A stretch of 64,000 nucleotides of DNA from Hyalangium minutum (GCF_000737315.1 NZ_JMCB01000008.1:525980-589979), one strand, 5' to 3'. Numbered from the stretch's first letter, positions 14,641-36,398 are shown. The notes: generated from the sequence alone by a model not told the origin. Made by a program: numbers and translations.

Positions 14641-14716
14641 GAACACCACGTCCTGTGCGCCTTCCCACAGCTCCAGCTCGGCTCAGGGCGCGCGCGTCGG
14701 ACAGCTCCAGCTCGGG
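14641..14716 (-). mobile_element. Short relic related to the junction sequence at 16061-16110 and to the IS91-like transposase 3' end
   Basis: CCAGCTCGGC..GGGCGCGCGCG.CGGACAGCTCCAGCTCGGGC shared with 16063-16109; AACACCACG shared with the remnants at 21087 and 32339. Confidence 0.4.
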
Positions 14717-14965
14717 CGCCGCGTACAGGTCCACCTCGGCACGGGGGACATACCGTAGGACTCTCCAAGTCCTATTCAACTACCCGCCCTCTGCGAGCAT
14801 GAACTTTCCAAGTCGGTGCGTGCCAGAAGACTTCGTAGGTCATAGGCTGGGATGGCATGGGACTTGTTAGGTCCTAAAATCTCGTCTGACGTATTGGTGT
14901 GTGCGCAACCTGTCCCGGGGAACTTGCGATAACTCCGATCACTCGGGCTGTGCCCGGGAGGCCCC

Positions 14966-15535
14966 ATGACCCATCACGCCAACTCTTGGCGCCTTAGGTG
15001 TGCTCTCCTGATCTGCGCCAGCCTGTTAGCCGGTGTGGGCTGTAGTTCGACGCAAGCTGCCCATCAGGGCACCGGCGGATCGGGCTCTGCGGATGGGGCT
15101 GCCGCATACGTGCAGGAAACCGCGCAGCGCGGGGATTCCATCGCGCAGGCTGCCCCCGCCCAATGCGGCCCGTTTGACAGCACCGTTTCCTGCTGCCTTA
15201 AGCAGCACCCGGGCGAGTTCGGACGCTGCGGGGCTATAGACCCTGGGAAGGCCCCCACGCGGGCACCCAAGCAAGCGCCCCGGACGGATCCGAATCCGTA
15301 CCCGCCCCCCACTACGGATCCGTACCCGCCCCCCACGGATGCAGCCCCTCCCGACAGACGGAAGAGGGATCAGCAATGCCGCGAGTATTGGAATCAGTGC
15401 ATCGCGCTCGGAGGCGAGTACGAGAAGCGCGGGCAGCATGGCCGCACCATCTGCGCGTCCTGCTACGACCAGTGCATGGGGCTGGGCTACTGGCCCAAAG
15501 AGGTCAACGACTTTGAATGTCTCGGAGGCTTCTAG
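14966..15535 (+). CDS. Cys-rich myxobacterial lipoprotein, putative toxin
   Basis: Lipobox LAGVGC; SCCLKQHP..C; PYPPP repeat linker; C-terminal C..C..C..C..C..WP domain. Confidence 0.7.
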   Translation: MTHHANSWRLRCALLICASLLAGVGCSSTQAAHQGTGGSGSADGAAAYVQETAQRGDSIAQAAPAQCGPFDSTVSCCLKQHPGEFGRCGAIDPGKAPTRAPKQAPRTDPNPYPPPTTDPYPPPTDAAPPDRRKRDQQCREYWNQCIALGGEYEKRGQHGRTICASCYDQCMGLGYWPKEVNDFECLGGF

Positions 15536-16038
15536 CCGTGGCCCTCCTTCGTTGGGAATGGTGGAACAAGGTTGCCGAGGAACGCCAGTGGCTCACCCTC
15601 GGAATGAGCTTCGCAGAAGTGCCTTTTGACGCCTACGTGGCCGCGCTCAAGGATCTAGAGCGACAGTTTGCACGAGAGGCGCGAACTCCTGGCGAACGCC
15701 TGCACCTCAAGCGCCTGACGGCAGAGGACGCATTGAACGCGGCATTCAGGATGGATCGCCCATGGAAAGACTTTGGCCCGTGGCTGCGCAGGCTCAAACG
15801 GCTGGGCTTCCCGAATCTCTGGAGCCGCTATCAGATCTCGACGATCTATGTGCAGTCCTTGCACAACTTCCCGGAGCAAACCCGAGACGCTTTTGAGATG
15901 TTGGCGGACACAAGGCGCAGGGTCTTGAGGCGACGCAAGGATCGTTCTTCGCGCCAACAGATGCTTGACGGGATCGAGCACGCCCGACGCGAGGCAGCAC
16001 AATACGGCATCCAGCCGCCCGCGAAATCGAAGCGGTAG
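15517..16038 (+). CDS. Helical hypothetical protein, putative immunity partner (start may be 15604)
   Basis: Directly follows the lipoprotein gene; charged helical sequence. Confidence 0.6.
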   Translation: MSRRLLAVALLRWEWWNKVAEERQWLTLGMSFAEVPFDAYVAALKDLERQFAREARTPGERLHLKRLTAEDALNAAFRMDRPWKDFGPWLRRLKRLGFPNLWSRYQISTIYVQSLHNFPEQTRDAFEMLADTRRRVLRRRKDRSSRQQMLDGIEHARREAAQYGIQPPAKSKR

Positions 16039-16219
16039 GGCACGGGAAACGCCCGCACAATCCCAGCTCGGCCCCATGGGCGCGCGCGGCGGACAGCTCC
16101 AGCTCGGGCCGGTGGCGCTCGCCAGGACGGCAGCCATCGTCGCCGCTCCGGTCGCGGGAGGGACGGCCCTTCGCCTCATCGACTCGGGCCGCCCCCCGCA
16201 CAGATCTCCGGCCCCCTTC

Positions 16220-16407
16220 TCGTACGCCAACACCCTGAAGCCTGCCTCCACACCTCAAGCACGCCAACACATCCAGGGCGAACGTCCTTTTCTGCAGCCC
16301 GGCCCAGTCCAAACCGGGGGTGCGCTCCTTCCAAAGGCTCCTCCACCCTCGCGGCAAAGGCGGGGCTCTCCTCCGTAAGCCCCGGCTCCGCCCCTGCTTG
16401 AGGGAGC
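16220..16407 (-). mobile_element. IS91-like (Y2/HUH) transposase 3' remnant
   Basis: KERTPGLDWAGLQKRTFALDVLACLRCGGRL, a C-terminal CxxC motif; closely similar to 32440-32628. Confidence 0.75.
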
Positions 16408-16432
16408 AACGTCCCCGGCCTCGGACGTGCAG

Positions 16433-17275: not shown

Positions 17276-17465
17276 GCGGTACCTCCTCGTTGCCCGCAAA
17301 GGTTGGGCACGCCGCTCCCTCCGTGCAGGCGGAGGCCGTCACGACCCAGCGAGGGCTCACCGGTCCCGAGGCAGAGCCGCTCTGGCCGCCGGGCCGGGCC
17401 GGACGGACCTTCAGGCGGAAGGGACGGACGCTGGCGCCGGCGTGGCCGCCGGTGAGGAGGGCAGG

Positions 17466-18128: not shown

Positions 18129-18512
18129 CGCTTCGAGGAGGTGGACGCACTCCGTGGAGGAACCTCAGCGGGCATGTCCCACCTCACCCGGGGAACGTGC
18201 AGCACCGATTTTCCCTCTCCGGAAAGCCATGTCAGATTTCAGGGGCCCCGCCCGGGGCTTCTCGCCATGCTCTCTCTTCGCCAGCTCCCCCGCCTCGGCC
18301 CGCTCCTCCTCGTCCTCGCACCGCTGCTCGCGTGGGCTGCGGGGGGGCGCCCATCCCGCTGAGGGAGGGCTGGCGGCACCGATGGGGGATGCTCCCTCCT
18401 GGGCGGGAGCATAGGGGCGACGAGAAACTCGTCCTTGCCACTCTCGCAGCGCACCCGCGCGAAGCCGTGCGCCCTGGGAGACCGGGGAACTCAGGCCGCT
18501 TGCGTCCAAGCA

Positions 18513-18668
18513 GATTGCCCCTGTTGGGCCGCATGTGCCCCCAGTGTGACCCTCCAGCGGGGAATTGAACGGGACGAGACGGGACGGAGCGGAGGAGCGA
18601 TCCACTGTGAGATCAAGGCGTTAGCCGGTAACAGCGCGACCTGCTTGGGGTTTTGCTTCCGCCTTGAT
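18513..18668 (+). repeat. Shared att arm, full-length copy
   Basis: Near-identical to 36399-36554; abuts a tmRNA 3'-end copy. Confidence 0.85.
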
Positions 18669-18693
18669 GCGGGTTCGATTCCCGCAGCCTCCA
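18669..18693 (+). repeat. tmRNA 3'-end copy (att-like remnant 3)
   Basis: GCGGG-TTCGATT-CCCGC-AGCCTCC-A. Confidence 0.8.
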
Positions 18694-18839
18694 AAAGCGG
18701 TGAACGTCCGCAACTTGCCCGCCTAAGCTGCCCCTCATGCCCTGACGGCGAGCAGGACACGCGCGATACTCAGGCCCGGGCCGCGTGCTTCTGGTACAGT
18801 GGCCGACCCGCAGAGATAGGAATTTCAAAGGAGCGCATT

Positions 18840-20861
18840 GTGCAGCTTGTCTCGGTGCAGGTGGGGCCGTTCAAGTCAATCGACCAACCACAGACGGTCA
18901 AGATCGACCCAGAGGTAACCGTCTTCGTCGGTATGAACGAGGCGGGTAAGACCGTGTTCCTTCAGGCCCTTCATAAATCCGACGATGCCGCCGGTGTTGC
19001 CGTGTTCGACCCTGTTGAGGATTACCCTCGCAAGGACTTGTCGGCCTATCTCAGGCAACACACGACGAAGCCCGCCCAGGTCACGAAGCTTACCTACAAG
19101 CTTACAGCGGGCGAACTGGACGAGTTGAACCGCGACCTGCATACGAATCTCCCCGCCGACTTCGAATTTTCCCTGCTCCGGCATTATGACAATACACTAC
19201 GGATCCAACTGGGGATCGACGAAAAGCCTGTCCTGGATCATCTACGCCAAGATAGCCGGCTCAGCTCGGATGTGAGGGCAGCGCTAGCGGCAGTCACATC
19301 GGTAAGAAGTATCCCCAAAGCGACCGAGCATCTCAGCCTTACAGACAACGACAAAGGCTGGCTCGCCTCGGTCCAGCAGCGCATCACCAAGACGCAATGG
19401 GAATCCGTGACTCAAGCTGAAGCTTGGAATTGGTTGCAACCCCGCCTCCCAAAGTTTGCCTTCTTCGGAGAGTACGAGCTCCTGCCGAGCAAGCTGAATC
19501 TTACCGACTTGGCACGACGTGTTGAACAGGCGAAGTCAATCACGACGCCCCAGAATGCTCAGCAGGCCAAAGCTTCACAAAAACCTCTGGAGCCTCAGCA
19601 TCGTGCGGTACTTGCCTTATTGAGGATGGCTGATATCTCCGTAGAAGACTTCACGCGACCTGGAGGCGGGTATGAGTCCCTCAAGGCTAGGCTTGAAGCC
19701 ATCTCCATCAAGCTGACCGACGAAATACTGGAGTTCTGGAAACAAAACGAAGATCTAGAGGTCGAAGTCGACATTCGGCTCGATCCGGACGAACAGCCGC
19801 CTTTCAACAGTGGGCCGAACATCTACCTGCGCATCAAGAACCGGCGGCATCGCGGGGTCAGTACACCGTTCCACCAGCGGAGCAGGGGCTTCACCTGGTT
19901 CTTCAGCTTTCTGGTGTGGTTTGACAGCGTGCAACATCAACTAGCTGTTGGCGACCCTGGGGACCGTGACCTCATCCTGCTGCTGGATGAGCCCGGGCTG
20001 AATCTCCACGCACTCGCCCAAGCCGATTTCCTGCGGTACATCGACAGATTGGCTGAGAAACATCAAGTACTCTACACCACGCACTCTCCATTCATGGTCC
20101 ACTCTGACCGGCTTCACCAAGTCCGTGTCGTCGAGGATCGCGTAAAGGTGGGTACTGTGCTTTCCGATAATGTGAGCAACTCAGATCCGCGAACCATCTT
20201 TCCACTACAGGCGGCATTAGGCTGGACCCTAGCGCAGAACCTCTTTATTTCGGAGCGAAACCTATTGGTGGAAGGGCCCTCCGACCTGCTGTACCTGCAG
20301 GCGATCTCATCCCTCCTTGAGGCCCAAGGACGAGTTGGTTTGCGTGAGGAAGTAACTATCGTACCGACAGGTGGGCTCGACAAGGTGGTCACCTTCGTTG
20401 CGTTGCTTGGGGCAAACGGGCTCAAGCTTGCGGTCCTTCACGACTATCGGGGAAGGCCAGAGCAGAAACTTGAGGACCTTGTGAAGCAGAAGATGATCGC
20501 CCCCAAGGCCTTGCTCGACGTTTCGCAATTCCGAGATCTCGCCAATATCGGAAAGAGCAGCCGAGCATCGGACATCGAAGATCTCCTGCCGGTGAGCCTG
20601 TATCTCGATTACTTCAATAGGGCTTTCAGCCAGCAACTAGGTAGCACGAAGGTCACCGAAGCGGACTTGCCGGCCGGGGACCGGGTTCTTGATCGGATTG
20701 AACGACATCTGTCCACCACTAGAATACATATCCGCCCCAGTGGAGGCTTCAATCATTACGCCGTGGCCTCCCTCTTCGTCAGTAGTCCTCCATCCAGTCT
20801 CGACGCGGATGCCCTGGCTCGGTTCGAGTCGTTATTCCGGGCAGTGAATGGGCTGTTCTGA
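18840..20861 (+). CDS. OLD-family ABC-ATPase + TOPRIM nuclease, candidate anti-phage protein
   Basis: AAGGAG RBS before GTG; Walker A GMNEAGKT, Walker B LLLDEPG, TTHSP H-loop, TOPRIM LLVEGPSD and LHDY; AT-richer than flanks. Confidence 0.85.
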   Translation: MQLVSVQVGPFKSIDQPQTVKIDPEVTVFVGMNEAGKTVFLQALHKSDDAAGVAVFDPVEDYPRKDLSAYLRQHTTKPAQVTKLTYKLTAGELDELNRDLHTNLPADFEFSLLRHYDNTLRIQLGIDEKPVLDHLRQDSRLSSDVRAALAAVTSVRSIPKATEHLSLTDNDKGWLASVQQRITKTQWESVTQAEAWNWLQPRLPKFAFFGEYELLPSKLNLTDLARRVEQAKSITTPQNAQQAKASQKPLEPQHRAVLALLRMADISVEDFTRPGGGYESLKARLEAISIKLTDEILEFWKQNEDLEVEVDIRLDPDEQPPFNSGPNIYLRIKNRRHRGVSTPFHQRSRGFTWFFSFLVWFDSVQHQLAVGDPGDRDLILLLDEPGLNLHALAQADFLRYIDRLAEKHQVLYTTHSPFMVHSDRLHQVRVVEDRVKVGTVLSDNVSNSDPRTIFPLQAALGWTLAQNLFISERNLLVEGPSDLLYLQAISSLLEAQGRVGLREEVTIVPTGGLDKVVTFVALLGANGLKLAVLHDYRGRPEQKLEDLVKQKMIAPKALLDVSQFRDLANIGKSSRASDIEDLLPVSLYLDYFNRAFSQQLGSTKVTEADLPAGDRVLDRIERHLSTTRIHIRPSGGFNHYAVASLFVSSPPSSLDADALARFESLFRAVNGLF

Positions 20862-21322: not shown

Positions 21323-24019
21323 ATGTTGCAGATCCTGAGTGAAACGGTTCTCAAGGGCACCTACCGCATCGATCAGAGGATCGGCATGGGCAGCATGGGC
21401 CCCGTCTATCGAGCCACCCACCTCGGGCTCGATAAGGCCATGGCGGTCAAGTTGCTCTCGCCGGATGCGCTCACCACGCCGCAAAGCTTCGCGCGCTTCA
21501 AGCGGGAGGCCATGGTCGTCAGCGGGGTCAACCACCCGGCGATGGTGCACGTCATCGACTTCGGGGAGGAGCAGGGCACGCCGTATATCGTCATGGAGTA
21601 CGTGGACGGCATCGATCTGGCCGAGTACATCGCGCACCAGGGGCCGATGCCGCCACGGCAGGCGGTGGCGGTGATGCGGCAGCTCGTCTCGCTGCTGCGC
21701 ACCATGCATGCGCAGGGCATCATCCACCGCAACCTCAAGCCGAGAAATATCCGGGTGCTCCAGGACGGCGAGGAGGATGGCCAGCTCTTCGTGAAGGTGC
21801 TTGCCTTCAGTCTCGCCACGGTGTTCGGCGAGCCTATCCATTCGGTGATACAGGGCACGCAACTGTACATGGCGCCAGAGCTGCTTGCCGGCAGGCAGAG
21901 CGACCAGCGGACGGATCTGTACGCCGCAGGGATGATCTTCCAAGAGATGCTAAGCGGAGATCGGCCCCCTCCTCTGCCCCTCCGCTGGGGGGCGCGACCT
22001 CTCCCCCCGGCCATGCCGGTGCCGAACGTGGTGCGCCAGACGCTGTGGACGTTTTGTGAGGAGCGCCCCCAAGATCGCTTCCAGAGCGCAGCGGAAGCGG
22101 AACATGCGCTCAGGGCTTGTGAGGATGCGCTGCGTCCCACTCCACCGGTGGCAGAGCGCAACCCCGCACGGCCCTCGGCCCAATCCAAGCCCCTCTCCCG
22201 CGAGAAGCCCCCGCCAGCCAACGGCCTGGACGTCGCCATCCTTACGGTCATCCAGCCCGAGCTCTTTGCCGTGCTCGACGCTTTGGGCATCTCTGCTTCT
22301 CAGAGAGAGAAGGATGCACACGGGACTGTGTACTTTCGCGGTTCACTGCGCTCGCAACTCACTGGGAGGGACTACGAACTCGTGGTGACGTGCATCGGTG
22401 CTGCCGGCAATTACGATGCATCCGCCGCCGCCTATGGCGTGATTGCGAAGCATCGACCCCGAGCGCTGCTCCTGCTGGGCATTGCTGCGGGAATGCGGGA
22501 GAAAGTCCAGATCGGGGAGGTTGTCCTCTCCGAACGCGTGGTGGCCTATGAACCTGCTGCTGTCGTGTCGTCGGGCGATGAGCGCTCATCGAACACGGAA
22601 CCACGCCCCGAGATCGATAGGCTGCCCCACTCAATGAGTCAGGATGTCACCACCTACAGGCCCAAGCCCGCCAGACTCGAGGCCCTATTCCGCGATGCCG
22701 GAGGACAGTTCCCTGTTGCGCCGGCCGGCCGAGAGGACGAGTTTCTAAACCTGGTCGCCACGACCATCAAGGTACGTGCCGCGACGATTGCCAGCGGGGA
22801 GAAGCTGCTGAGAGACCCAGCCAAGCTCCGAGCCGTCAAGCAGGAGCAGCATGGCAAGGTCGAGGTGGGCGAAATGGAAGCTGCGGGGCTGGTGGCTGCG
22901 TGCCGCCGCGCCAATGTCCCCTGGCTGGTCATCCGGGGCATCTCGGACTTTGGAGATCCATTCAAGGATGATCGTTTCCACGATTTCGCTTCACGTGCGG
23001 CAGCGACGGTCCTCGCGGATTTCCTGGCGTATGGGCTTTCCATTCCTGCCCGCTCGGGTCAGGTGACGGTGCCCGTTCCTCACTACCCCGATGAGCAGAC
23101 CCGCCTCTTGAGCCTTCAGCTTCAGGGCGCACGGGAGCGGAAGAAGCGGCTCCAGGACTCTGGGGTTGGGACGGCTCAGGTTGATCAAGAGATTCTGGCT
23201 CTGCGCCGTCACCTCCGAGAAGGAGGCCGGCTTCGAGCGGGTGATTCGCTAGGGGATGGCCGATACCTGCTGATCGAGTCCGTAGGCAGTGGAGGCTTCG
23301 CTACCATCTGGAGAGCACACGATCAGCAGGCGCAGAGGATCATCGCCATCAAGGTGCTGCATGCGAACCTGGCCGGCGATGAGGAACGACGGGAGCGATT
23401 CTTCCGCGGGGCGCGACGCATGGCGGAACTCCAGCACCCCGCAGTGGTTCAGGTGCTCGAGCAACACGGCGAAGACGGTGGGTACCAGTACTTCGTCATG
23501 GAATACATGCCTGGTGGAAACCTTCGTCAAGCAGTGCTCGAAAGACTCATCATGCCCGACAGAATCATTCCCATCATCCTCCGTGTCGGAGAAGCACTCG
23601 CGCTGGCTCACTCAAAGGGGATCATCCACCGCGATATCAAGCCCGCCAACATCCTCTTGGACAGCCATGGACAACCCCACCTTACGGACTTCGACCTCGT
23701 GGGTGCACTCGATACGACAGGAGGGACGAAGAGTGGAGCGATGGGGACCATCGTGTACGCGGCACCAGAGTGCCTGGAGCGTCCCCAGGAGGCAGACCCG
23801 AGGGCCGACGTCTATGGCCTTGGCATGACCGCCATCTTCGGGCTCCATGGAGCCGATCTGCCATTGCAGATCCTGAGGGGGCCCGAGCCCTTTCTCGAGC
23901 AACTTCCCTGCGCTGAAGGGCTGAAGGCGGTCCTGCACCGCGCCACCAGCATGGTTCCGGGCGATCGCTATGAAGATGCAAGCGAGTTCATCACGGCCCT
24001 TAGCGCATCGGGCGAATAG
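21323..24019 (+). CDS. Pseudokinase - PNP/MTA-SAH nucleosidase-like domain - Ser/Thr kinase fusion
   Basis: Kinase 1 has HRNLKPRN and AFS in place of HRD and DFG; middle domain ILTVIQPE..LLGIAAG..IASGEK..EMEAAG..IRGISD; kinase 2 has GSGGFA, AIK, HRDIKPAN, DFD and APE. Confidence 0.85.
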   Translation: MLQILSETVLKGTYRIDQRIGMGSMGPVYRATHLGLDKAMAVKLLSPDALTTPQSFARFKREAMVVSGVNHPAMVHVIDFGEEQGTPYIVMEYVDGIDLAEYIAHQGPMPPRQAVAVMRQLVSLLRTMHAQGIIHRNLKPRNIRVLQDGEEDGQLFVKVLAFSLATVFGEPIHSVIQGTQLYMAPELLAGRQSDQRTDLYAAGMIFQEMLSGDRPPPLPLRWGARPLPPAMPVPNVVRQTLWTFCEERPQDRFQSAAEAEHALRACEDALRPTPPVAERNPARPSAQSKPLSREKPPPANGLDVAILTVIQPELFAVLDALGISASQREKDAHGTVYFRGSLRSQLTGRDYELVVTCIGAAGNYDASAAAYGVIAKHRPRALLLLGIAAGMREKVQIGEVVLSERVVAYEPAAVVSSGDERSSNTEPRPEIDRLPHSMSQDVTTYRPKPARLEALFRDAGGQFPVAPAGREDEFLNLVATTIKVRAATIASGEKLLRDPAKLRAVKQEQHGKVEVGEMEAAGLVAACRRANVPWLVIRGISDFGDPFKDDRFHDFASRAAATVLADFLAYGLSIPARSGQVTVPVPHYPDEQTRLLSLQLQGARERKKRLQDSGVGTAQVDQEILALRRHLREGGRLRAGDSLGDGRYLLIESVGSGGFATIWRAHDQQAQRIIAIKVLHANLAGDEERRERFFRGARRMAELQHPAVVQVLEQHGEDGGYQYFVMEYMPGGNLRQAVLERLIMPDRIIPIILRVGEALALAHSKGIIHRDIKPANILLDSHGQPHLTDFDLVGALDTTGGTKSGAMGTIVYAAPECLERPQEADPRADVYGLGMTAIFGLHGADLPLQILRGPEPFLEQLPCAEGLKAVLHRATSMVPGDRYEDASEFITALSASGE

Positions 24020-24125
24020 GATGCCGGTTGAGGGTGTGGGACGCATAGGAGGGACAGGGGCACTGTTAGGTGCGAGGGAGGGGCATAGAGCGGCAGCGGA
24101 GGGTGGCTGACAGGGTTCCAGGGCC
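24013..24125 (-). mobile_element. IS91-like terminus copies (two adjacent variants)
   Basis: CGAATAGGA..CGG.TTGAGGGTG.GGG at 24013 matches 28962; ACGCATAGGAGGGACAGGGGCACTG at 24041 matches 20885 and 36345. Confidence 0.65.
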
Positions 24126-24247
24126 GTACGCGGGACGGGTGGCACCCACGGAACTCCGACAGGCCCGCTGTCAAAATGCTGCGGCTGGAAGTCCTACGGG
24201 ACCTACGCTCGACCGTGTGAGATCGCCCTCGCCAGAAGTTCCAAGCG

Positions 24248-24272
24248 GCGGGTTCGATTCCCGCCGCTTCCA
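24248..24272 (+). repeat. tmRNA 3'-end copy (att-like remnant 4)
   Basis: GCGGG-TTCGATT-CCCGC-CGCTTCC-A. Confidence 0.75.
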
Positions 24273-24483
24273 AAGGATGAGCGTTCTACTGAGAGCCAGG
24301 AGGCACAGAGCTCGGAGGAGGCTTTCTCCCTGACGGGCCTGACGAAGCAGTCCTCTGTTCTCCCTCCGAGGCACCGTGCAGTGGAGTGTGTACCGCCTGC
24401 GAAGCCCAGAGGTCACCGCGAGCGCCACCATCGTCGCCGTTCGAGGCGTTGCGGCTCTGCCGCGACGCACGTAGCGTCGGTGC

Positions 24484-25679: not shown

Positions 25680-25767
25680 ACCCCAGGACGCCAGATCAGC
25701 CCTCGGGCCCCTTGGCTGGTCGAGCCCCCCGGCCGCCTCTCTGCGCGTGTCCGGGCTAAGGTCGGGC

Positions 25768-28700: not shown

Positions 28701-28935
28701 TTACCGTACGCCGTGGGGAGCGCTGAGCCTCTCCATGCAAGCGGAGGGTGATCGGCTGACCATTCGCCTCCAGGGCACCGCCCGGCCACCTGGCGGTTTC
28801 GTCATTCCCGCTGATCTCTTCGGCCCTTCCGACGCGCTCGTCGACGGCCGGCGCGCGAAGTGGAGCGGCGCTGAGCTCAAGGCCGCGCGCGCTCCGGCGG
28901 TCATCGTCCTCACCCGCCGGAAGGGAGGTCCCTGA
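25768..28935 (+). CDS. Secreted discoidin (F5/8 type C) domain six-hairpin glycosidase
   Basis: Signal peptide; AVDNDPATAWRS..LTLDLG discoidin motif; YARSWIRDG (alpha/alpha)6 glycosidase motif. Confidence 0.8.
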   Translation: MMRRANSPLVATLALFLTAAAPDPRATPVLDTFDDLTPWRVAASDGVSVSKAPVPGAQGGALRLSFNLGPSAGYAFARQDLPLCLPDNFELAFLVRGEAAPNNLEFKLVDASGDNVWWHVRRDFQFSREWREVRIKRRQISFAWGPLEDKTLRCTATLEFVVSAGSGGGAGWIEIDQLMLRHLPADSGTPPPITASATTANGLAPLAVDNDPATAWRSPAPARDPQILTLDLGRMREFGGLSLLWLPGAHARDYDIELSDEGLHWRLLRRVHGGDGGEDPIMATESEARFIRIRMQNPAGQGFGLADIRVEPLQFGADANAFLTELARRAPRGLYPRGFAGQQTYWTLIGVKSGGDGALLSEDGALEIGRGGVSIEPFVIEAGRLTTWADAAIAHRLADNALPIPSVEWTRPSWKLTVAAFVAGERGNERLVGRYTLKNLTGAPLSLRLALAVRPLQVNPPTQFLTTPGGISPIRTMSWDGTVMSAGLRRIYPLQRPDMASVSTFDSGAYPQRLMRADAAGERAAEDETGLASGVLAYDVVLPPDGEKRLGIVAPLTGNTQALPSAAPDSWLDEEEARVAAFWRKELSSAVVEAAGEGREVTNALRTSLAHMLIMQDGPILRPGARSYARSWIRDGAMIAEALLRLGHAEEAKAYLRWYATHLFANGKVPCCVDKRGADPVPENDSHGEFIHLAAEVWRYTGDRALLQSVWPKVAAAAEYMNQQRLSERTPAHLATPERRNLYGLMPPSISHEGYSAKPAYSYWDDFWTLRGFEDAVMLAAAFGDPMTRTRLAAQRDEFRTDLMKSLRLTADRFKIPYIAGAADLGDFDATSTTIALSPGGLRRQLPSDLLEGTFDRYWQNFVARRDGATSWKDYTPYEWRVVGAFVRLGSRDRARQALDFFMNDRRPLAWNQWAEVVGREPREPRFIGDMPHGWVASDYIRSALDLFVYERRDDSALVLAAGVPESWLRGDGVRLENYRTPWGALSLSMQAEGDRLTIRLQGTARPPGGFVIPADLFGPSDALVDGRRAKWSGAELKAARAPAVIVLTRRKGGP

Positions 28936-28961
28936 CCCGGCGGACCGGCGGGCGCAGAGGA

Positions 28962-28993
28962 CGAATAGGAAACGGGTTGAGGGTGAGGGCTGG
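28962..28993 (-). mobile_element. IS91-like terminus remnant
   Basis: CGAATAGGAAACGGGTTGAGGGTGAGGGCTGG shares TGAGGGTGAGGGCTGG with 32146 and its start with 24013. Confidence 0.5.
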
Positions 28994-29252
28994 AGGCGTG
29001 CTCGAATCGTAGTGTTGCCACCGCAGGCCGGCCGCTTCGCCGAGCTGGTGCTCAGTGAGGATGCAGGGGGGAGGTTGCCACGAGATCCGCGAGGTGCGCA
29101 TCCCGGAAGAGCGCCTTGGTGAGCCGCGCCTCCCTCTCCTTCGTGAGGGGGCCGGGGAGAGGGGGAGCGCGCACCTCCTCCTCTCCTCATGGCAGAGGGG
29201 TGGGCGCTGGCCCCCGGCGTGGCCAATGTTGTGGCGAAAGAGGATTCTCCCC

Positions 29253-29825
29253 ATGGCCACACTCGCTCCTCCTCCTCCAGCTTCGGGCGTCCTTGCGCAC
29301 GGTCTGCCAGCCGGTACGCTCGCACCCGAGCTGGACCTTCTATCCACCCCTGATGGGCGACGGGTCAAGCTCTCGGACCAGAAGGGCTCCCCCGCCGTCC
29401 TCGTCTTCTACCCGGGGGACTTCACCCCTGTCTGCACCAACGAGCTGGGGCTCTTCAACGAGCTGATGCCCGTGTTCGGCCAGTTCGGCGCGAAGGTGTT
29501 CGGCATCTCGTGCGACTCCCTCTGGAGCCACATCGCCTTCGCCAAGGAGCTCCACATCCAGATTCCGCTCCTCTCCGACTTCCATCCGAAGGGAGAGGTC
29601 TCGCGCCGCTACAACATCTACCGGGAGGACGTCGGCATCTGCGAGCGGGCGCTCTACGTTATCGACGGCAAGGGCGTCATCTACTGGAGCTACGTCTCGC
29701 CCATCGAGCTCAACCCCGGCGCGGACGGCGTCATCGACGCGCTCGAGCGGCTGACCGGCAAGCAGATGGAGTTCCCCACCTTCCAGCCACAGCAGCAGCC
29801 ACTTCAGCCGGAGGCCCGGCCATGA
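29253..29825 (+). CDS. Peroxiredoxin (AhpC/TSA family)
   Basis: VFYPGDFTPVCTNE peroxidatic motif. Confidence 0.9.
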   Translation: MATLAPPPPASGVLAHGLPAGTLAPELDLLSTPDGRRVKLSDQKGSPAVLVFYPGDFTPVCTNELGLFNELMPVFGQFGAKVFGISCDSLWSHIAFAKELHIQIPLLSDFHPKGEVSRRYNIYREDVGICERALYVIDGKGVIYWSYVSPIELNPGADGVIDALERLTGKQMEFPTFQPQQQPLQPEARP

Positions 29826-30424
29826 GCAGACTTCGTAGAGGCGTGGACGCCAATGACTGGGCGCGGGGGCCGGCCGATGCCCCCGTCACCCTCCTGGAGT
29901 ACGGCGACTTCGAGTGTCCCTTCTGTGGGCGCGCCTTCTGGGAGCTGAAGCGGCTTGAGAGCGCTGTCGGAGATCGGGTCCGCTTCGTCTCCCGCCACTT
30001 CCCCCTCACCCAGCTCCACCCGCACGCGCTGCTGGCCGCGGAGGCCGCGGAGACCGCCGGCGCGCAGGGAAAGTTCTGGGAGATGCACGACATGCTCTTC
30101 CAGAACCAGCAGAACCTGGAGGCTCCCGCGCTGCTGACGTACGCGGCCGACCTGGGGCTCGACATGGGCCGCTTCACTCGCGACCTCCAGGAGCACCGCT
30201 GCCTGCCGAAGGTCCAGCGCGACTTCATCGAGGGCGTGCGCAGTGGCGTGAACGGTACCCCGACCTTTTTCATCAACGGGGAGCGCCACAACGGCGCCTA
30301 CACGGCCGAAGCGCTGCTCGCCGCCATCGAGCAGCGGATGGGGCCCGACATCGAGCCGATGACGGGGCTTCCCTGGGAAGGCGGTCGCGTGCCGCGCATG
30401 GGCCGGCCCCATTCGCGCATGTAG
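29822..30424 (+). CDS. DsbA-like thioredoxin-fold protein
   Basis: YGDFECPFCG CxxC and GVNGTPTFFING cis-Pro loop; ATGA overlap with the peroxiredoxin gene. Confidence 0.9.
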   Translation: MSRLRRGVDANDWARGPADAPVTLLEYGDFECPFCGRAFWELKRLESAVGDRVRFVSRHFPLTQLHPHALLAAEAAETAGAQGKFWEMHDMLFQNQQNLEAPALLTYAADLGLDMGRFTRDLQEHRCLPKVQRDFIEGVRSGVNGTPTFFINGERHNGAYTAEALLAAIEQRMGPDIEPMTGLPWEGGRVPRMGRPHSRM

Positions 30425-30724
30425 GGGGCGCAGGGGCCCCGTGACGGCATCGCAACGAGAGTCCTCGGGGGCGAGCGCGAGCGTGAAGCGCGCGGACCAG
30501 CGGTACATGGGCCGCGGCTCCCCGCCGCACGACGGCCCCGACGACGGGACGCTGCCCATCCTCCTGCACGAGTCCGCAGGCAGCAGACACCAGGGCAGGC
30601 CCTGCAGTGCGTCGGTCCCCCTCCCGCCGCGCGTCCGGCTCCCTCTGTGAGGCGGGTTGTCATGACGTGCGTTCCTGCCAAGGCTTGTCGAGGACTACTG
30701 CAATGCCATGCACAGGGAGACACC

Positions 30725-31867
30725 ATGAAGGCACTCGTCTACGAGGGACCGCGCAAGGTCAGTGTGAAAGAAGTGCCGGACGCGAAGATTGAGCGGCCCA
30801 CCGATGTAGTGGTGCGCATTCGCAGTACCAACATCTGCGGCTCCGACCTGCACATGTACGAAGGCCGCACCGACATGGAGTCGGGCCGGGTGCTCGGGCA
30901 CGAGAACCTCGGAGAGGTGGTCGAGGTCGGCTCGGCGGTGGACAAGCTGAAGGTGGGCGACTGGGTGGCCGTTCCCTTCAACGTCAGCTGTGGCCACTGC
31001 GAGAACTGCGAGCACGGCCTGACCGCCTTCTGCCTCAACGCCAACCCGTCGGGGACGGCCGGCGCCGCCTACGGCTTCGCAGACATGGGGCCCTACAATG
31101 GCGGGCAGGCCGAGTACCTGCGCGTGCCCTGGGCCGACTTCAACTGCCTGCGGCTGCCAGAGGACGCCGAGGAGAAGCAGCTCGACTACGTGATGCTCGC
31201 CGACATCTTCCCCACCGGCTACCACGTCACCGAGCTCGCCGGGCTCATGCCGGGCGAATCCGTCGTCATCTTCGGTGGAGGGCCCGTGGGACAGATGGCC
31301 GCGCTCTCCGCCACCATCAAGAGCGCGAGCAAGGTGATGGTCGTCGACTGCCATCCGGACCGGCTCGCTCTTGCCGAGAAGATTGGCGCCATCCCCATCG
31401 ACTACTCGAAGGTGGACCCCGTCGAGCGGGTGAAGGAGCTCACCCACGGCAAGGGCGCCGACCGCGGCTGCGAGTGCGTGGGCTACCAGGCGCACGACCC
31501 GCAGGGGAGGGAGCACCCCAACCTGACGATGAACAACCTGGTGAAGGCGGTGAAGTTCACCGGCGGCATCGGCGTGGTGGGCGTCTTCATCCCCAATGAC
31601 CCCGGCGGCCCGGACCCCCTGGCCAGGCAGGGTGAAATCGTCTTCGACTGGGGCATGCTCTGGTTCAAGGGGCAGCGCGTGGCGACCGGCCAGTGCAACG
31701 TGAAGGCCTACAACCGCCAGCTGCGCGAGCTCATCCACCTGGACAAGGTGAAGCCCTCGTGGATCGTCTCGCACACGCTCCCGCTCGACAAGGCGCCGGA
31801 CGGCTACCTGCACTTCGACAAGCGCGACAGGGGATGGACCAAGGTCGTCCTGCAGCCGGCCGCATGA
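30725..31867 (+). CDS. Glutathione-independent formaldehyde dehydrogenase-like Zn-dependent dehydrogenase
   Basis: ICGSDLHMYEGRT, GHENLGEV, CGHCENC..C, GGQAEYLRVPWADFN, DIFPTG. Confidence 0.9.
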   Translation: MKALVYEGPRKVSVKEVPDAKIERPTDVVVRIRSTNICGSDLHMYEGRTDMESGRVLGHENLGEVVEVGSAVDKLKVGDWVAVPFNVSCGHCENCEHGLTAFCLNANPSGTAGAAYGFADMGPYNGGQAEYLRVPWADFNCLRLPEDAEEKQLDYVMLADIFPTGYHVTELAGLMPGESVVIFGGGPVGQMAALSATIKSASKVMVVDCHPDRLALAEKIGAIPIDYSKVDPVERVKELTHGKGADRGCECVGYQAHDPQGREHPNLTMNNLVKAVKFTGGIGVVGVFIPNDPGGPDPLARQGEIVFDWGMLWFKGQRVATGQCNVKAYNRQLRELIHLDKVKPSWIVSHTLPLDKAPDGYLHFDKRDRGWTKVVLQPAA

Positions 31868-32124
31868 GCCGGCGCTAAGGCGAGGGAAGGAAGGGGCCGC
31901 TTGATGGGCCCCCAGGGCCTCGCGAACCGCGCGTTCGGCGACCAGCCCGACGAGCCGCTTCTAGGCGGGATAGAAGCCATGTTGAGGGTGGAGCGCACCC
32001 CAGTGGGGGCCTTACTTCTGCCGGGGCGCTGAACGCCAAGGGCTGCGGGGCCGCCATCCTGGCGGGCTTCTACCGAGCCAGCATGCGAGCCTGGACACGC
32101 GCTGGCTCTACAGATTCCAGGTTC

Positions 32125-32628
32125 TAAGACAGATAGGAGCTGTGCTGAGGGTGAGGGCTGGTGCAGAGGGGCCGAGGAGGGCCGAGGACGACCGCAGAGG
32201 GGGACATGTGGGCTGTGTGCCAAGCCGGTGGAGAGGCCGCGCAGCCACTTTGAGGTACACGCCTACCCCAGCCGCCTTCCCAGGAGGGGCGCGGCAGGTG
32301 CCTGGCTCTCTTGGCTGGCTGGGGCGGCTTGAGCTTCAACACCACGCGCTCTGGGGCGGCCCTCGCGCAGGGGCCAGGTGCTCACTCGCCGGGGGCAACC
32401 CCAGGTGCTCCACTATCGCTCTCACCCCTCCTGCTCCCTTCACAGACGCCAACACCCTTAAGCCTGCCTCCACACCTCAAGCACGCCAACACTTCCAGGG
32501 CGAACCTCCTTTTCAGCAACCCGGCCCAGTTCAAACGGGGTGTGCGCTCCTTCCTCGGCTCCTCCCCCGTCGCGGCAAAGGCGGGGCTCTCTTCCGTAAG
32601 CCCCGGCTCCGCCCCTGCTTGAGGGAGC
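32125..32628 (-). mobile_element. IS91-like terminus plus transposase 3' remnant
   Basis: PRKERTPRLNWAGLLKRRFALEVLACLRCGGRL; terminus TAAGACAGATAGGAGCTGTG and internal GGTACACGCCT..AGCCGCC.TCCCA shared with 20890-21040. Confidence 0.75.
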
Positions 32629-32902
32629 GCCTCGGGCGACAGGTGCGCGTACTTCATTATCGAACGGCGGCTATTTTTAGGTGCGCCGTAGAGTGCTTCC
32701 GCAGCCGACCCGGGCAGGTCCACGCTCCTTTCTCGTCCCCTTGGGCAGCCCCCACGCCACACCAAGCCGTCCGGCGCACGTTGATCAGGCGCCCGGATTC
32801 CTCACGGGATTAGACGGCGCCATCTTGCCAACCCAACAGTGCCTTGATGCCCTAGAAAAGCATCAGCTACTCAATAGACCATAGGGCGGGTATATTGCTC
32901 TT

Positions 32903-35089
32903 ATGATCCATGTGGACCGCAGTCGCGTCTCTCCTCCACCGAAGTTTTTCGCGGCGGCTCAATCTCTTCTCGATAAGTCACGGCTTTTTTTCAACAATCC
33001 AGATAGCCTCAGGAGCCAAAGCCGCCCCGCCATCTTCGGCCAATTCGTCAACCTAAAGAATGTGGTGCGACCTGCTCTAATCGAACTATTCCACGGCAAG
33101 TGCGCCTATTGTGAATCGAGTGTCGCAGCCACAGGAAGTACCGCAGTGGATCACTTTCGTCCGAGGATGGATGCTGCAAACCTTGATAGGAAGATTTCGC
33201 CCATCCACTATTGGTGGCTGATGGCCACTTGGGACAATCTCTATCTGGCATGCCTTGAGTGCAATCGATACAAGCGCAACCTTTTTCCGGTGCGCCACCA
33301 ACGGGCTGTTCCCGAGAGCTTTGGACAAGCACTTGAGTCAGAAGGCCGGTTGCTTATCGATCCTTGCAACGACGAGCCCGAACAATCCTTCGCCTTTCAG
33401 CCCAATGGTCAAGTAGAGCCTCTTGATGAACACGCCAAGGTAACCATTGAAGTGCTGCAGCTCAATCGCCCTAGTCTTGTCCACATGAGACGGGATCATT
33501 ATGCTCGCATCACACAGGAACTCGGCCTCTGGATATCTAGCCAGAGGCAGACAAGCGTGTCAGGCGATGATCGGCTTGAGGCTGGACTTCGAGATAGGCT
33601 TTTAAGCTATACGCACAGCAGCGCTCCCTATGCAGCCGTTGCGCGGCAGGCACTTAGGCACGTTCTCCATCGCCTGCGAGGAGATGCTCTCCATACGGAA
33701 GTCCCTCCGGCACAGAAGAAAATCAGGCGAGGGCATCAAATCCCTCGAAAGCTGGAAAAAGCAGCTGAATCGCTCCGAACAGGGTGGATCTCGCGAATAG
33801 AAATAGAGAACTTCCGCGGCATCGACTCCCTTGCACTTGACTTTCCTCGTCTAGAGCATCGAGATTTCCTTGTAGACGACGAGATGACAGCAATAGCTTC
33901 GCCTAGCGAGACAGAAGACCCTGACATACGCCGCGAACCATGGCTGATGCTAATTGGCCCGAACGGTGTCGGGAAGAGCAGTGTCCTCAAAGCGGTCGCT
34001 CTAGCCCTCGTAGATGAGCCAACTCGAAACCGTCTCATTCCTGATGCCTCTTCAGTGCTCAACCAGCGCTCGCGCAGTTCCACCGGTGTCGTATTTGTGC
34101 GCTTTGACAATGGTGAGTCCGTCAGAATTTCTTTCAGTCGACGGTCTCGTACATTTCGGCAGCAAGGAGGCAGAGCACACTCTCCATTGCTTGCTTATGG
34201 TTCAACCAGGCTCCTCTCGCCGGGCACTGCACGTCTCGAACGACCGCGTAGCGTGCGCGTTGATAATCTTTTCCACCCAAGAACTCTGCTCGGCGATGCA
34301 GAGAAGTGGCTTGCCGATACTAGCCAACTCTTAGATAGCGGCTTTGACCTTCTGGCCCGCTCACTCAAAGATCTCCTCTCTCTAGATGATGAGGACCGCG
34401 TCATCCGTCAGAATGGCCGCCTGCTCATAGAGATGTCGGGTTCCCGGATTCCTCTGCACGAACTGAGCGATGGCTACCAGTCCATTGTTGCACTAGCCAC
34501 TCATATCATGGTGAACCTCTCACGAGGCGGCTTTGCACTGGAGCATGTAGCAGGAACGGTACTACTTGATGAACTTGAGGTTCACCTCCACCCAACTTGG
34601 AAAATACGTATTGTGCGCAGTTTAAGGCGAGTTTTTCCTCGGGTCCGATTCATTACAACTACTCATGATCCGCTTTGTCTAAGAGGCTTGGAATCAGGCG
34701 AGGTCTACCACCTTGATCGGGAACCAGAGTCGAAAAGGGTGCGAGCCATTCAATTGGACGTGCCGCCTGGCTTGCGTGTGGATCAACTCCTGACTGGCCA
34801 ATGGTTCGGTTTGAGTTCAACTCTCGATGCAGACACGTTGGCTCTTATGGAGAAACACCAGAGCCTACTCGCGCGACGAAGACTCAGCGCAACGGAGCAA
34901 CTCCAACTTGAGCAATTGAGCAACGAACTGCAAAGTCGCCTTAGCACTTTTGCCGATACATCTCTTGACCGCATGGCGCTGAGCGTCGCAGCACAACTCA
35001 TGGCCAGCACATCAACTCCGCTGACCCCAGATGAACGAACAAGGCTTCGTGAAGGAATTCGTCAAGCTCTGTCGGAAAAGGCTCCTTGA
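32903..35089 (+). CDS. HNH nuclease (PtuB/TIGR02646-like) fused to ABC-type ATPase (PtuA-like)
   Basis: N-term KCAYCE..VDHFRP..WDNLYLACLECN..LLIDPC..LQLNR; C-term ISRIEIENFRG, GPNGVGKS, LSDGY, LLDELEVHLHP, TTHDP. Confidence 0.85.
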   Translation: MIHVDRSRVSPPPKFFAAAQSLLDKSRLFFNNPDSLRSQSRPAIFGQFVNLKNVVRPALIELFHGKCAYCESSVAATGSTAVDHFRPRMDAANLDRKISPIHYWWLMATWDNLYLACLECNRYKRNLFPVRHQRAVPESFGQALESEGRLLIDPCNDEPEQSFAFQPNGQVEPLDEHAKVTIEVLQLNRPSLVHMRRDHYARITQELGLWISSQRQTSVSGDDRLEAGLRDRLLSYTHSSAPYAAVARQALRHVLHRLRGDALHTEVPPAQKKIRRGHQIPRKLEKAAESLRTGWISRIEIENFRGIDSLALDFPRLEHRDFLVDDEMTAIASPSETEDPDIRREPWLMLIGPNGVGKSSVLKAVALALVDEPTRNRLIPDASSVLNQRSRSSTGVVFVRFDNGESVRISFSRRSRTFRQQGGRAHSPLLAYGSTRLLSPGTARLERPRSVRVDNLFHPRTLLGDAEKWLADTSQLLDSGFDLLARSLKDLLSLDDEDRVIRQNGRLLIEMSGSRIPLHELSDGYQSIVALATHIMVNLSRGGFALEHVAGTVLLDELEVHLHPTWKIRIVRSLRRVFPRVRFITTTHDPLCLRGLESGEVYHLDREPESKRVRAIQLDVPPGLRVDQLLTGQWFGLSSTLDADTLALMEKHQSLLARRRLSATEQLQLEQLSNELQSRLSTFADTSLDRMALSVAAQLMASTSTPLTPDERTRLREGIRQALSEKAP

Positions 35090-35092
35090 GTC

Positions 35093-35923
35093 ATGGACCG
35101 CTTCCCGCGTCCCTCTAAGCCAAGAGGTTTTGATGCTTCGGTCAAGGCACACAAGGATCGAGTTCAATCTCACTTCAAGAAAAAGAAGCCGGGCAAATGG
35201 AAGTTTGAGGATATTTGGAGCAAGTACAAGCGGAACATCGCAGTCGCCTCACATGGAAAATGTGGCTACTGTGAAGTACGCGTTACTGGCTCCCAACATG
35301 GAGACGTCGATCACTTCTACCCTAAGGGAGAAGTGTGGGCACTCCATGATGACCGTACCAAATGGGGTCAAGAGATTCCTGGGCTATCTAAAGTCAAAGG
35401 GAGAAAAAAGAAGCTCCTTTCGCGCAGAGGCTACTGGTGGCTAGTCTACGAATGGAAGAACTACGTACTGGCATGCCTTGTGTGTAATCAGCAATGGAAA
35501 CTCTCGTTCTTTCCGGTACGTGCCAAGCGCCGCAAACTTCCTCCTTTGCCGCGTAGTAAAGAGAAACCCCTACTGCTAAACCCTTTCTTTGGTCCAGATC
35601 CAGTGAGGCACCTTCAATTCATCATTACAGGTGCAATCATTCCCTATAAAGGTAGCCGTTACGGTTTCGAGACTATCAGAACATGCGGGCTAGATCGCCC
35701 CAGTCTTACTCTCGATAGACATGAAAAAGCACAACGGGCCTACTATCTCCTCAAGAAGTTGACGACGTGTTTGCCGACGACTCCCGAGTATGACCTCACG
35801 CTCAAAGACTTTTTCCTTATGGGAAGAAAGGAAAATGTTCACTCTGGAATGATCCGCGCCATCTTTGAACAGGAGACTGCTATGAAGTGGAAGCAGCTTG
35901 AGAAACGGTTCGCTATCCCCTAG
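35093..35923 (+). CDS. HNH nuclease (PtuB/TIGR02646-like)
   Basis: KCGYCE..DVDHFYPK..YWWLVYEWKNYVLACLVCN..LLLNP..GLDRPSL; 3 bp after the ATPase stop; AT-rich. Confidence 0.85.
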   Translation: MDRFPRPSKPRGFDASVKAHKDRVQSHFKKKKPGKWKFEDIWSKYKRNIAVASHGKCGYCEVRVTGSQHGDVDHFYPKGEVWALHDDRTKWGQEIPGLSKVKGRKKKLLSRRGYWWLVYEWKNYVLACLVCNQQWKLSFFPVRAKRRKLPPLPRSKEKPLLLNPFFGPDPVRHLQFIITGAIIPYKGSRYGFETIRTCGLDRPSLTLDRHEKAQRAYYLLKKLTTCLPTTPEYDLTLKDFFLMGRKENVHSGMIRAIFEQETAMKWKQLEKRFAIP

Positions 35924-36157
35924 CACCTACCCTGGGGTGCGGTTGCCACGATAGGCGAGGCAGATCTTAACAGGTGTAAGTGGTGGCCCTTATGCTGGAG
36001 CAATTGACGCAGGCCGTTATCAGGCCTTCCACGAAGAAAAGCCTGATGCACAAACAGATTGCTCGCCAGTTGGGCATTTGAGAGATCATCGTCAACGCAT
36101 AGACGGGATAAGTGGCCACGCACTCCCCGGACGCATGTGCCTCCAGTGTGCCTTGCT

Positions 36158-36182
36158 GAGGGTTCGATTCCCACCGCCTCCA
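36158..36182 (+). repeat. tmRNA 3'-end copy (att-like remnant 5)
   Basis: GAGGG-TTCGATT-CCCAC-CGCCTCC-A preceded by a very short arm relic GCATGTGCCTCCAGTGTGCC. Confidence 0.7.
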
Positions 36183-36344
36183 TTCTGAGAAGCCCAGCAA
36201 ACTTGATGATGGAGAAGCGGGCGTCCCGGCTCAGCCCACCTCGTCTCTGGAGGCGCTGGTCCACAGCGTCACGGAGTGAAAACCGGCCGACGGGGAATTC
36301 TCACGGAGTTGGGAGCGACGCGTGAGGGCCGTGCAGGGCTCAGT

Positions 36345-36398
36345 GCATAGGAAGGACAGGAGCCCTCTTGGGCGTAGCGGGCGGGAGCAGAGCGGGAG
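36345..36398 (-). mobile_element. IS91-like terminus copy
   Basis: GCATAGGAAGGACAGGAGC..TTG..CGGGCGGGAGCAGAGCGG aligns with 20887-20938. Confidence 0.7.

Follow-up and report, generated by a model that had tools for sequence, protein, structure and literature searches.

Probable non-autonomous derivatives of an IS91-family element arrayed in one orientation across an island of Hyalangium minutum and recurring in other myxobacteria

Transposition of IS91-family insertion sequences begins at oriIS and ends at terIS. In 1-14% of events it fails to end there, so that neighbouring DNA is mobilised too, and with transposase provided in trans 89 bp of ter and 82 bp of ori are enough for an IS91 mini-element to move (PMC13181058). 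In IS801, internal tetranucleotide stops release right-end fragments of 229, 360 and 679 nt in 26% of transposition events (PMC3189936). The published oriIS of ISCR27 is GCGGTTGAACTTCCTATACC, which lies 236 bp beyond the stop codon, and that of ISCR1 is GTGGTTTATACTTCCTATACCC (…CTTCCTATACCC). Here we analyze a 64,000-nt stretch of Hyalangium minutum (NZ_JMCB01000008.1:525980-589979, hereafter the window) together with 77 related loci, labelled L003 and so on, from seven myxobacterial genera. We propose that positions 60-42,300 of the window form a variable island into which non-autonomous derivatives of an IS91-family rolling-circle element of myxobacteria have probably inserted again and again, always in one orientation.

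The original prediction for this DNA started from a repeated motif that was read as an IS91/ISCR-type terminus. The motif is real: the pattern GCATARGARGGAYAGGRGC matches exactly at 20887, 24043 and 36345, always on the + strand, where shuffled sequences lead one to expect 0.18 matches and none of 100 shuffles reaches 4, although the copies at 20887 and 24043 had been placed 2 nt off. Alignment shows it to be the tip of a longer conserved module on the - strand, composed of the ~95 last codons of a gene, ~200 nt of non-coding DNA and a pyrimidine-rich terminus. Read on that strand, the motif (GCYCCTGTCCYTCCTATGC) is the oriIS-type terminus (…CCTTCCTATGC or …CCGCCTATAC) of an IS91-family element. 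It lies ~200 nt beyond the transposase stop codon, as ori does in ISCR27 and ISCR1, it resembles …TTCCTATAC, and it has TTCCTAT(A/G)C in common with the oriIS of ISCR27 and ISCR1. Because the terminus of the module both matches these published sequences and sits in the expected place, we identify the motif as an ori-type terminus, in agreement with the earlier reading. Of the 224 module pieces across the loci, 132 extend to model positions 480-491, and copies diverge right after CCTAT(A/G)C plus ~2 nt; these 2 nt are constant inside a subfamily and thus belong to the element. The two variants, at 24013 and 28962, belong to a second end subtype (CCCTCAACnnGnnTCCTATTCG), of which they preserve terminal fragments, and the weak copy at 18409 retains ~10-13 nt of the terminus, fused to transposase zinc-finger codons and the element's left end.

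The gene fragments beside these termini had been taken for transposase 3' remnants, and their translations bear this out. They match positions 424-507 of 509 of the NCBIfam model ISCR_clade_Ia (E = 4e-10 and 3e-6), as well as the C-terminus of full-length IS91-type transposases with Zn_Tnp_IS91 and Y2_Tnp domains. The matches cover the C-terminal 47-84 residues alone, and at 38.7 and 26.2 bits they fall short of the 925-bit cut-off for ISCR clade Ia (NF052416). Full-length genes with Zn_Tnp_IS91 (PF14319) and Y2_Tnp (PF04986) are found at L003, L068 and L079, and these domains recur in many further proteins. The element at L079:2798-4541 (~1.74 kb) is intact, and runs from a hairpin through a 170-nt leader, tnpA (446 amino acids, aa) and a 200-nt 3' untranslated region (3'UTR) to …CCCTCACCCTCAACATGGCCTCTATCCCGCCTATAC, so the motif does end intact IS91-like elements, as had been supposed. 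Full-length 1.7-kb elements exist yet are rare. The myxobacterial element is like ISCR1, ISCR2 and ISCR27 in its transposase family, in a C-terminus that matches ISCR_clade_Ia, and in a TTCCTAT(A/G)C end ~200-236 bp past the stop codon, and its truncated copies lie in the same direction between accessory genes, as truncated ISCR copies do beside resistance genes. It differs in the score against the ISCR model, in its residence in Myxococcota chromosomes among defence, redox and glycosidase genes, and in having a defined left end, and gene capture is here a possibility rather than something demonstrated. Separately, a partial H. minutum transposase (P0436) is encoded on the same contig, outside the window.

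A second boundary lies within tnpA. Upstream DNA is unrelated at dozens of junctions, which begin at (G)CTC followed by CC(T/C)CAAGC, with the break point between the two, in codons for L-P-Q-A-G, where longer copies run on upstream with tnpA sequence (…CCATTTCTG). Two window stubs, previously described as stopping at nearly the same point, end on the same nucleotide of the element (16407 and 32628) and are two cases of this recurrent boundary. Mapped onto the full-length element, the 50-nt bin around the boundary contains the starts of 57 pieces and the ends of only 2-3 tnpA fragments; the boundary is therefore the left end of an element and not an insertion hotspot in tnpA. GCTC is constant at the boundary itself, and the terminal tetranucleotide on the tnpA-sense strand is G(C/T/G)TC. 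Complete 0.49-kb units account for 64 pieces, a further 65 keep the ori end with the left side cut, 39 show the reverse, and 47 lack both ends. In their sequences the pieces show a constant ori end with a variable or premature left end, the pattern that one-ended transposition in the IS91 family produces.

Local copies of this unit, which point to recent activity, can be nearly or fully identical (100% among three copies in L057 and two in L005, 99.8% in L030), and their identity ends exactly at 5'-GCTCCC… on one side and at …CCTATAC plus 2 nt on the other. The flanks of the 100%-identical units are unrelated and carry no target duplication, and the two termini differ, leaving no terminal inverted repeats. 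Since identical units are separated by unrelated DNA, the unit seems to move alone, which favours local hopping; no informative empty site was found when the flanks of every piece were compared with all loci. Judged by sequence comparison, the ~0.49-kb unit appears to be a discrete, self-contained, non-autonomous element, whose closest precedent is the "miniature" right-end fragments of IS801. As in those fragments of Pseudomonas syringae, the ori end is constant, the left end would arise by a premature internal stop, the sub-kilobase non-autonomous fragments coexist with few full-length copies, and adjacent DNA may occasionally be mobilised. In contrast to IS801, one internal site dominates in the myxobacterial unit and is kept across diverged subfamilies and seven genera. 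This site lies in coding sequence, the unit carries a ~95-codon open reading frame (ORF) annotated as a hypothetical protein or as 'HrpA', the tetranucleotide is G(C/T/G)TC on the tnpA-sense strand where IS801 has GAAC, and mobility is inferred from sequence.

The outer boundary of the conserved left end is a GC-rich hairpin of 5-12 bp. In 10 copies from 8 genomes, a conserved stretch of ~280 nt has the hairpin as its exact limit; this hairpin stands upstream of tnpA in L011, L030, L068 and L079, and it is antisense to tnpA in all but three of ~30 matches in the loci. It comes in three sequence types (loops TTCGATT, TTCAAGY and TTCGAAT), with GTTCRA kept in every loop. In the window the T-arm-like GGGTTCRANYCCC occurs in 7 copies, six of them on the + strand, against 0.05 expected, and these copies resemble the 3' end of a tmRNA or tRNA, with a T-loop-like loop, a 7-nt acceptor strand and a discriminator base. 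Three of the window hairpins each have an ori end at a distance of 230-290 bp and make up an internally deleted mini-element with it (18409-18694, 24042-24271 and 36341-36580). The element is like IS91 in its two unlike ends and in lacking terminal inverted repeats and target duplications, its GC-rich left hairpin may correspond to the one at the left end of IS91, and the mini-elements resemble the 89 + 82 bp mini-constructs of IS91. Unlike IS91, its hairpin is shaped like a tRNA acceptor/T-arm minihelix whose loop reads GTTCRANN, its ori end shows neither a CTTG/GTTC target nor subterminal palindromes, and it has no orf121.

This left end bears on the description of the region as a tmRNA island, which we reject. 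Neither ARAGORN nor Rfam, at gathering and E-value thresholds, finds a tRNA or tmRNA gene in the window or the 8 kb upstream, and the related loci contain no tmRNA gene and seven assorted tRNA genes. The hairpins are the elements' own left ends, found at dispersed loci and upstream of tnpA in other genera, and a left end that mimics tRNA/tmRNA explains the "tmRNA" pieces in the window. A sub-threshold tRNA-like match at 9619-9682 (-) reaches 23 bits with the Rfam tRNA model and has the T-arm GGGTTCAAGTCCC; it lies on the strand opposite the other hairpins and is not called by ARAGORN.

Derivatives of the element are abundant in this group of bacteria. A search with the stub protein gave 128 matches, and all 120 among the matches listed are short (53-168 aa), several being fused to unrelated N-termini (HrpA, FHA, GST) just before L-P-Q-A-G. 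A full HMMER scan gave 9,278 matches, of which the best 150 are nearly all short, and species-representative genomes contain 226 stub-encoding stretches. Titled stub records are nearly all from Cystobacterineae (Archangium, Cystobacter, Corallococcus, Myxococcus, Pyxidicoccus, Hyalangium, Vitiosangium). Pieces cluster, with two or more in 56 of 78 sequences, and neighbours share an orientation in 89 cases and oppose each other in 33. When the window was scanned with an nhmmer profile built from the aligned stub, 3'UTR and end, all matches fell on the - strand, and all ~12 pieces there point the same way, so the single orientation first reported is upheld (Table 1). Many stub ORFs (P0009, P0020, P0035, P0041 and others) are named 'ATP-dependent helicase HrpA' at NCBI. 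This misnaming probably spread from chimeric entries such as P0020, in which the internal boundary joins an HrpA N-terminus to the stub. The literature searched yielded no report of such elements in myxobacteria, of IS91 ends that resemble tRNA, or of defence islands with IS91/ISCR elements.

Table 1. Element pieces and intervening genes in the window, by position. TLD, tRNA/tmRNA-3'-end-like hairpin; UTR, untranslated region.
Feature	Position	Strand	Remarks
TLD, degenerate	62-100	-	Repeat family D12; T-stem broken; leftmost element piece in the window
Left-end fragment	880-1024	-	TLD 977-1024, 'GCATGT' box 935-976, part of 5'UTR; lines up with the left ends of copies from 8 other genomes
Stub, first ~65 codons of the 0.49-kb unit	16205-16407	-	nhmmer positions 3-184 (16388-16205); ori side gone; exact internal boundary at 16407, GCTC followed by CCTCAAGC; 90-96% identical to 32428-32628; lies 25 nt past the stop of an aldo/keto reductase gene
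Internally deleted mini-element	18409-18694	-	TLD left end, 78 nt, box, 5'UTR, zinc-finger codons (HGFARVRCESCKDE; tblastn to aa 42-60 of full-length transposase), last ~10 nt of ori terminus
OLD-family ATPase-TOPRIM nuclease	18735-20861	+	Pfam AAA_15, OLD-like_TOPRIM; PADLOC Old/GajA/AriA; GC 0.56
Ori terminus, ~200-nt 3'UTR and last ~60 tnpA codons	20877-21290	-	nhmmer match 21340-20877; transposase aa 387-425 align to 21266-21150; left cut precedes internal boundary; kinase start codon follows at ~21332
Ser/Thr kinase - PNP/UDP phosphorylase - kinase fusion	21332-24019	+	Pfam; PADLOC PD-T4-6-like kinases and PN-superfamily effector; GC 0.63
Terminal fragment, second ori-end subtype (…CCCTCAACCGGCATCCTATTCGCCCGATGCG)	24004-24040	-	Terminal 28 nt alone align; score above all shuffles for 5 of 7 reference ends
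Mini-element	24042-24271	-	~100 nt of ori end (nhmmer positions 379-481, 24140-24042) and left end with TLD of another subtype (24233-24271); this left end and L036:5621-5773 are 81% identical
RCC1-repeat protein (24666-25679) and F5/8-type-C / GH15-like protein (25747-28935)	24666-28935	+	Pfam, gene calls
Ori-end terminal fragment (CCTATTCG subtype)	28945-28995	-	nhmmer 28995-28952, E = 0.55 alone; fits end consensus; weakest copy
AhpC/TSA peroxiredoxin, DsbA/thioredoxin-like protein, Zn alcohol dehydrogenase	29253-31867	+	Pfam, gene calls
Ori-end fragment, ~85 nt	31956-32039	-	nhmmer positions 385-483, E = 8e-5; newly located
Complete 0.49-kb unit	32111-32628	-	Internal boundary (GCTC followed by CCTCAAGC) at 32628 to ori terminus; stub frameshifted; nhmmer positions 3-491, E = 9e-146 (match 32609-32111)
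Tyrosine integrase C-terminus remnant (…MKYAHLSPEA)	32629-32700	-	Abuts left boundary of complete unit
Septu-type pair: PtuA with N-terminal HNH/PtuB-like domain (32903-35089) and PtuB (35093-35923)	32903-35923	+	GC 0.53
Left-end fragment	36134-36183	-	Box, then TLD directly; spacing as in real tmRNA 3' end
Mini-element	36341-36580	-	65 nt of ori end (nhmmer 36405-36341) joined to 180-nt left end (box, 78 nt, TLD), beyond which lies a degenerate terminator-like hairpin (36581-36630)
Stub fragment, last tnpA codons and start of 3'UTR	39870-40007	-	nhmmer positions 192-334, E = 2e-18; also newly located
Rightmost TLD	42235-42282	-	Core-like genes (GC3 up to 0.9) from 42311 on

The account best supported by these data is repeated, oriented, local insertion and decay of non-autonomous right-end derivatives, with cassette capture a minority hypothesis. 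The full element of ~1.74 kb comprises, in order, a hairpin that imitates a tRNA/tmRNA T-arm with the 3' strand of the acceptor, a variable linker and 5'UTR, tnpA (Zn and Y2/HUH), a 3'UTR of ~200 nt, and …CCTAT(A/G)C. By analogy with IS91 and IS801, the transposase would nick at the ori terminus, displace the strand antisense to tnpA and halt at the first terminus-like signal. A strong signal of this kind would be the site inside tnpA, so that many events would release the last ~0.49 kb alone, consisting of stub, 3'UTR and ori end. The hairpin would serve as the outer terminus of the 1.74-kb element, and internal deletions between the two ends would yield the units of 230-290 bp. These small units would depend on transposase supplied in trans, and would reinsert nearby in the same orientation, mostly in intergenic DNA and with no target duplication; later deletions and nested events would then leave fragments that hold an end alone. 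It is conceivable that the OLD, kinase-PNP, Septu, redox and lectin blocks between the pieces arrived by read-through (one-ended) transposition or by recombination between copies.

Several observations weigh against this account, the case for which is wholly comparative. The excess of pieces that keep the ori end over those that keep the left end (65 against 39) is modest, indicating that decay and rearrangement also matter. No catalytic transposase domain is encoded in the window, where the last 26-95 codons alone survive. The ends and flanks of the related loci show no conserved tetranucleotide of the CTTG/GTTC target type abutting the ori end, a feature for which the original prediction had suggested looking. 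RNAalifold predicts no pairs for 30 diverse ori ends, where IS91 and IS801 have subterminal palindromes, and the palindrome beside the internal boundary is not conserved between subfamilies. Two complete genomes show no pattern that would amount to a replichore-wide orientation rule. Simple insertion explains neither the GC-block changes at element pieces nor a sulfatase gene in L005 that is cut exactly at an ori end, with its other half absent. As a separate check on nested insertion, each mini-element was removed in silico; this restores no older element, and similarity at 24272-24480 is unsupported against shuffles.

Some of these difficulties are met by the cassette platform originally proposed, in which ori, stub and adjacent genes are picked up by read-through, delivered beside a resident ori end and stacked as modules. 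The termini, stubs, orientation and boundary on which that proposal drew all hold, and the ~12 pieces in one orientation are what it would produce, but we consider it unlikely as the explanation of the island. It is right that termini follow closely on the stop codons of intact cargo ORFs, at 0-17 nt: the stop codon of OLD (20861) lies 16 nt ahead of an ori end and that of the F5/8-type C gene (28935) 10-17 nt ahead, and the last codons and stop of the kinase (24017-24019) fall inside an ori-end fragment. GC content shifts at 5 of the 6 junctions marked by pieces, between the OLD, kinase and PtuAB genes and other blocks at 0.67-0.71, and one-ended capture of cargo is possible and would fit these shifts. 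PtuAB lies between a complete unit and a left-end hairpin and is thus bounded by both end types; ori ends are often trailed within 0-6 nt by terminal fragments of other ori ends; and Archangium minus and Cystobacter fuscus share a GH10 gene, together with the stub attached to it, at 98.8% identity. The L005 sulfatase, the one clear case in an ORF test that high GC makes noisy, is not restored by excising the unit in silico, and one-ended transposition is documented for IS91, IS1294 and IS801. However, unrelated DNA separates identical units, implying that the unit travels by itself, and, one pair apart, no cargo-and-unit combination was found in two contexts. ORFs outside ori ends show no orientation bias (42 antisense, 50 sense) and have a median stop-to-end distance of 157 nt, and some blocks common to two genera lie beyond the ori end (L011/L042), where one-ended transposition could not mobilise them. 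Coding run-ins are depleted equally at the two sides of the elements (26% at each, 44% at random positions), with no truncation asymmetry between the ori and left sides, the junction of the 20877 piece with the kinase is not at a defined boundary, and the window lacks an intact transposase. In P. syringae, most IS801 fragments have been ascribed to reorganisations and not to one-ended transposition (PMC3189936). The original prediction spoke of a system that delivers defence genes, but the cargo is not specific to defence: the window blocks mix defence types (Old/GajA-like, PD-T4-6-like kinase with PNP effector, Septu) with redox enzymes and lectin-like proteins, and genes between pieces at other loci are equally mixed (GH10, GNAT, GT2, SDR with AraC, DUF6310). 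The closest relative of PtuA is 45% identical, and the kinase fusion has no relative above 41% identity in metagenomes.

If capture is set aside, the units of 0.2-0.5 kb might act mainly as portable sites for homologous recombination, with deletions trimming the island and no rolling-circle capture needed. The placement of pieces at block boundaries agrees with this, as do the many internal deletions and truncations (9 collinear deletion pairs among module pieces, and the 47 pieces without both ends) and the high-identity blocks shared across genera whose boundaries misfit one-ended transposition. The P. syringae study came to the same conclusion for IS801 fragments (PMC3189936), and complex class 1 integrons are thought to arise by recombination with ISCR1-containing circles. 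We nevertheless regard recombination as quite unlikely to be the principal process, as the copies flanking most window blocks come from different subfamilies, which at ~70% identity are a poor substrate, and as exact termini and 100%-identical local copies would go unexplained. It is more improbable again, to the point of being very doubtful, that the tmRNA-like pieces are att repeats of tandem tmRNA-targeting tyrosine-integrase elements, with IS91 pieces as passengers. Seven direct copies of a tmRNA-like 3' end would suit such islands, and there is a known case in which an island integrase moves an ISCR2-related unit via att sites (PMC9376610). In L031, L062, L074 and L077, moreover, the 3' end of a tyrosine integrase gene (…MRYAHLAPEARESAVQQLD) is followed by a 'GCATGT' box, a terminator-like hairpin with a T-run, and then the tRNA-like hairpin (L031:~10500-10800, L062:~19090-19800, L074:~19900-20243 and L077:~15600-15850; compare 32629-32700 in the window), and the integrase C-terminus seen in the window adjoins these elements in 5 other loci. 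Against this, the tRNA and tmRNA gene searches described above came up empty around the island and gave few unrelated tRNAs elsewhere, and the hairpins sit at dispersed chromosomal sites, bound the conserved transposase leader, and in three cases pair with an ori end. The integrases examined are fragments alone (~20 residues survive in the window, L062 has an ORF of 186 aa, and L074 lacks any integrase-frame ORF of at least 150 aa), Pfam scans of window ORFs detect no integrase domain, and no functional integrase was found beside an att copy. Integron cassettes and Helitrons were also considered and rejected. There is no integron integrase, and the repeats are IS91-type ends without conserved secondary structure; the likeness to Helitrons drawn earlier fails because relatives have Zn_Tnp_IS91 and Y2_Tnp with no helicase domain, and because their termini differ from 5'-TC … CTRR-3'.

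The integrase module also concerns the left end of the IS91-family element. It is oriented as tnpA, its T-run lies on the tRNA-sense strand, and its presence suggests that the IS91-family element either took its left end from an integrase-type element or has it in common with one. The hairpin may have been captured as an att-like tmRNA end, or it may be a terminus signal that the element adopted, and the tRNA-like end might be transcribed, as a terminator follows it in several loci. The GIsul2 and CR2-sul2 units (PMC9376610) are alike in linking an ISCR-type remnant to integrase att-like sequences, whereas the integrase fragments of the myxobacterial case do not allow integrase-dependent movement to be inferred. 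Short repeats, GGATTTGGTCC…TTTGGTCC, directly follow several ori ends and hairpins (L025:10203+, L035:10482+, L062:4899+ and 19600+, L066:10424+, L031:10750+), and are candidates for arm-type protein-binding sites or for the terminus of a further mobile element.

Oriented insertion and decay of right-end derivatives would explain a very common unannotated repeat of large myxobacterial genomes, hundreds of whose short ORFs are called "hypothetical" or, wrongly, "ATP-dependent helicase HrpA", and the exact termini can be used to mask or annotate it. It would also extend IS801-style premature termination to a lineage with one dominant intragenic site, and point to a tRNA/tmRNA-like hairpin as a transposon end. 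A bolder, speculative combination, which we think unlikely, is that the two built-in stops, the hairpin like a tRNA/tmRNA 3' end and the intragenic site, generate small oriented units that nucleate arrays in which read-through or recombination deposits foreign genes, a rolling-circle counterpart of integrons in Myxococcota. If units did recruit genes, soil predators could be building defence islands in this way, which for now is a hypothesis.

A few further observations concern the window and its relatives. Record coordinates put two genes of the contig 130.7 kb apart against 31.0 kb in the window, and the fetched DNA is still collinear with the window. A single perfect CRISPR repeat lies at 39796-39831 (Rfam CRISPR-DR23, 46 bits, barely above the gathering score), 40 nt from the stub fragment at 39870-40007, with no second copy in the window even at 3 mismatches. 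In Archangium minus, a 4.3-kb duplicate (L011:6221-10500 and L030:2545-6832, 93.7% identical) holds an IS91-type tnpA that is interrupted by a large serine recombinase gene, which is frameshifted and lies on the opposite strand. The stretch 3607-9072 of the window, inside the island between the first two hairpins, encodes two secreted-type proteins of very large size, with thrombospondin type-3 repeats (13 copies, 108-nt period) and Kelch repeats. An AHH-family nuclease toxin and an Imm11 immunity gene occupy 40294-42224, between a stub fragment and the last hairpin, and a 76%-identical AHH/Imm11 copy lies between module pieces at L075:7516-9504 in a delta-proteobacterial metagenome-assembled genome, in the opposite orientation relative to the stub.

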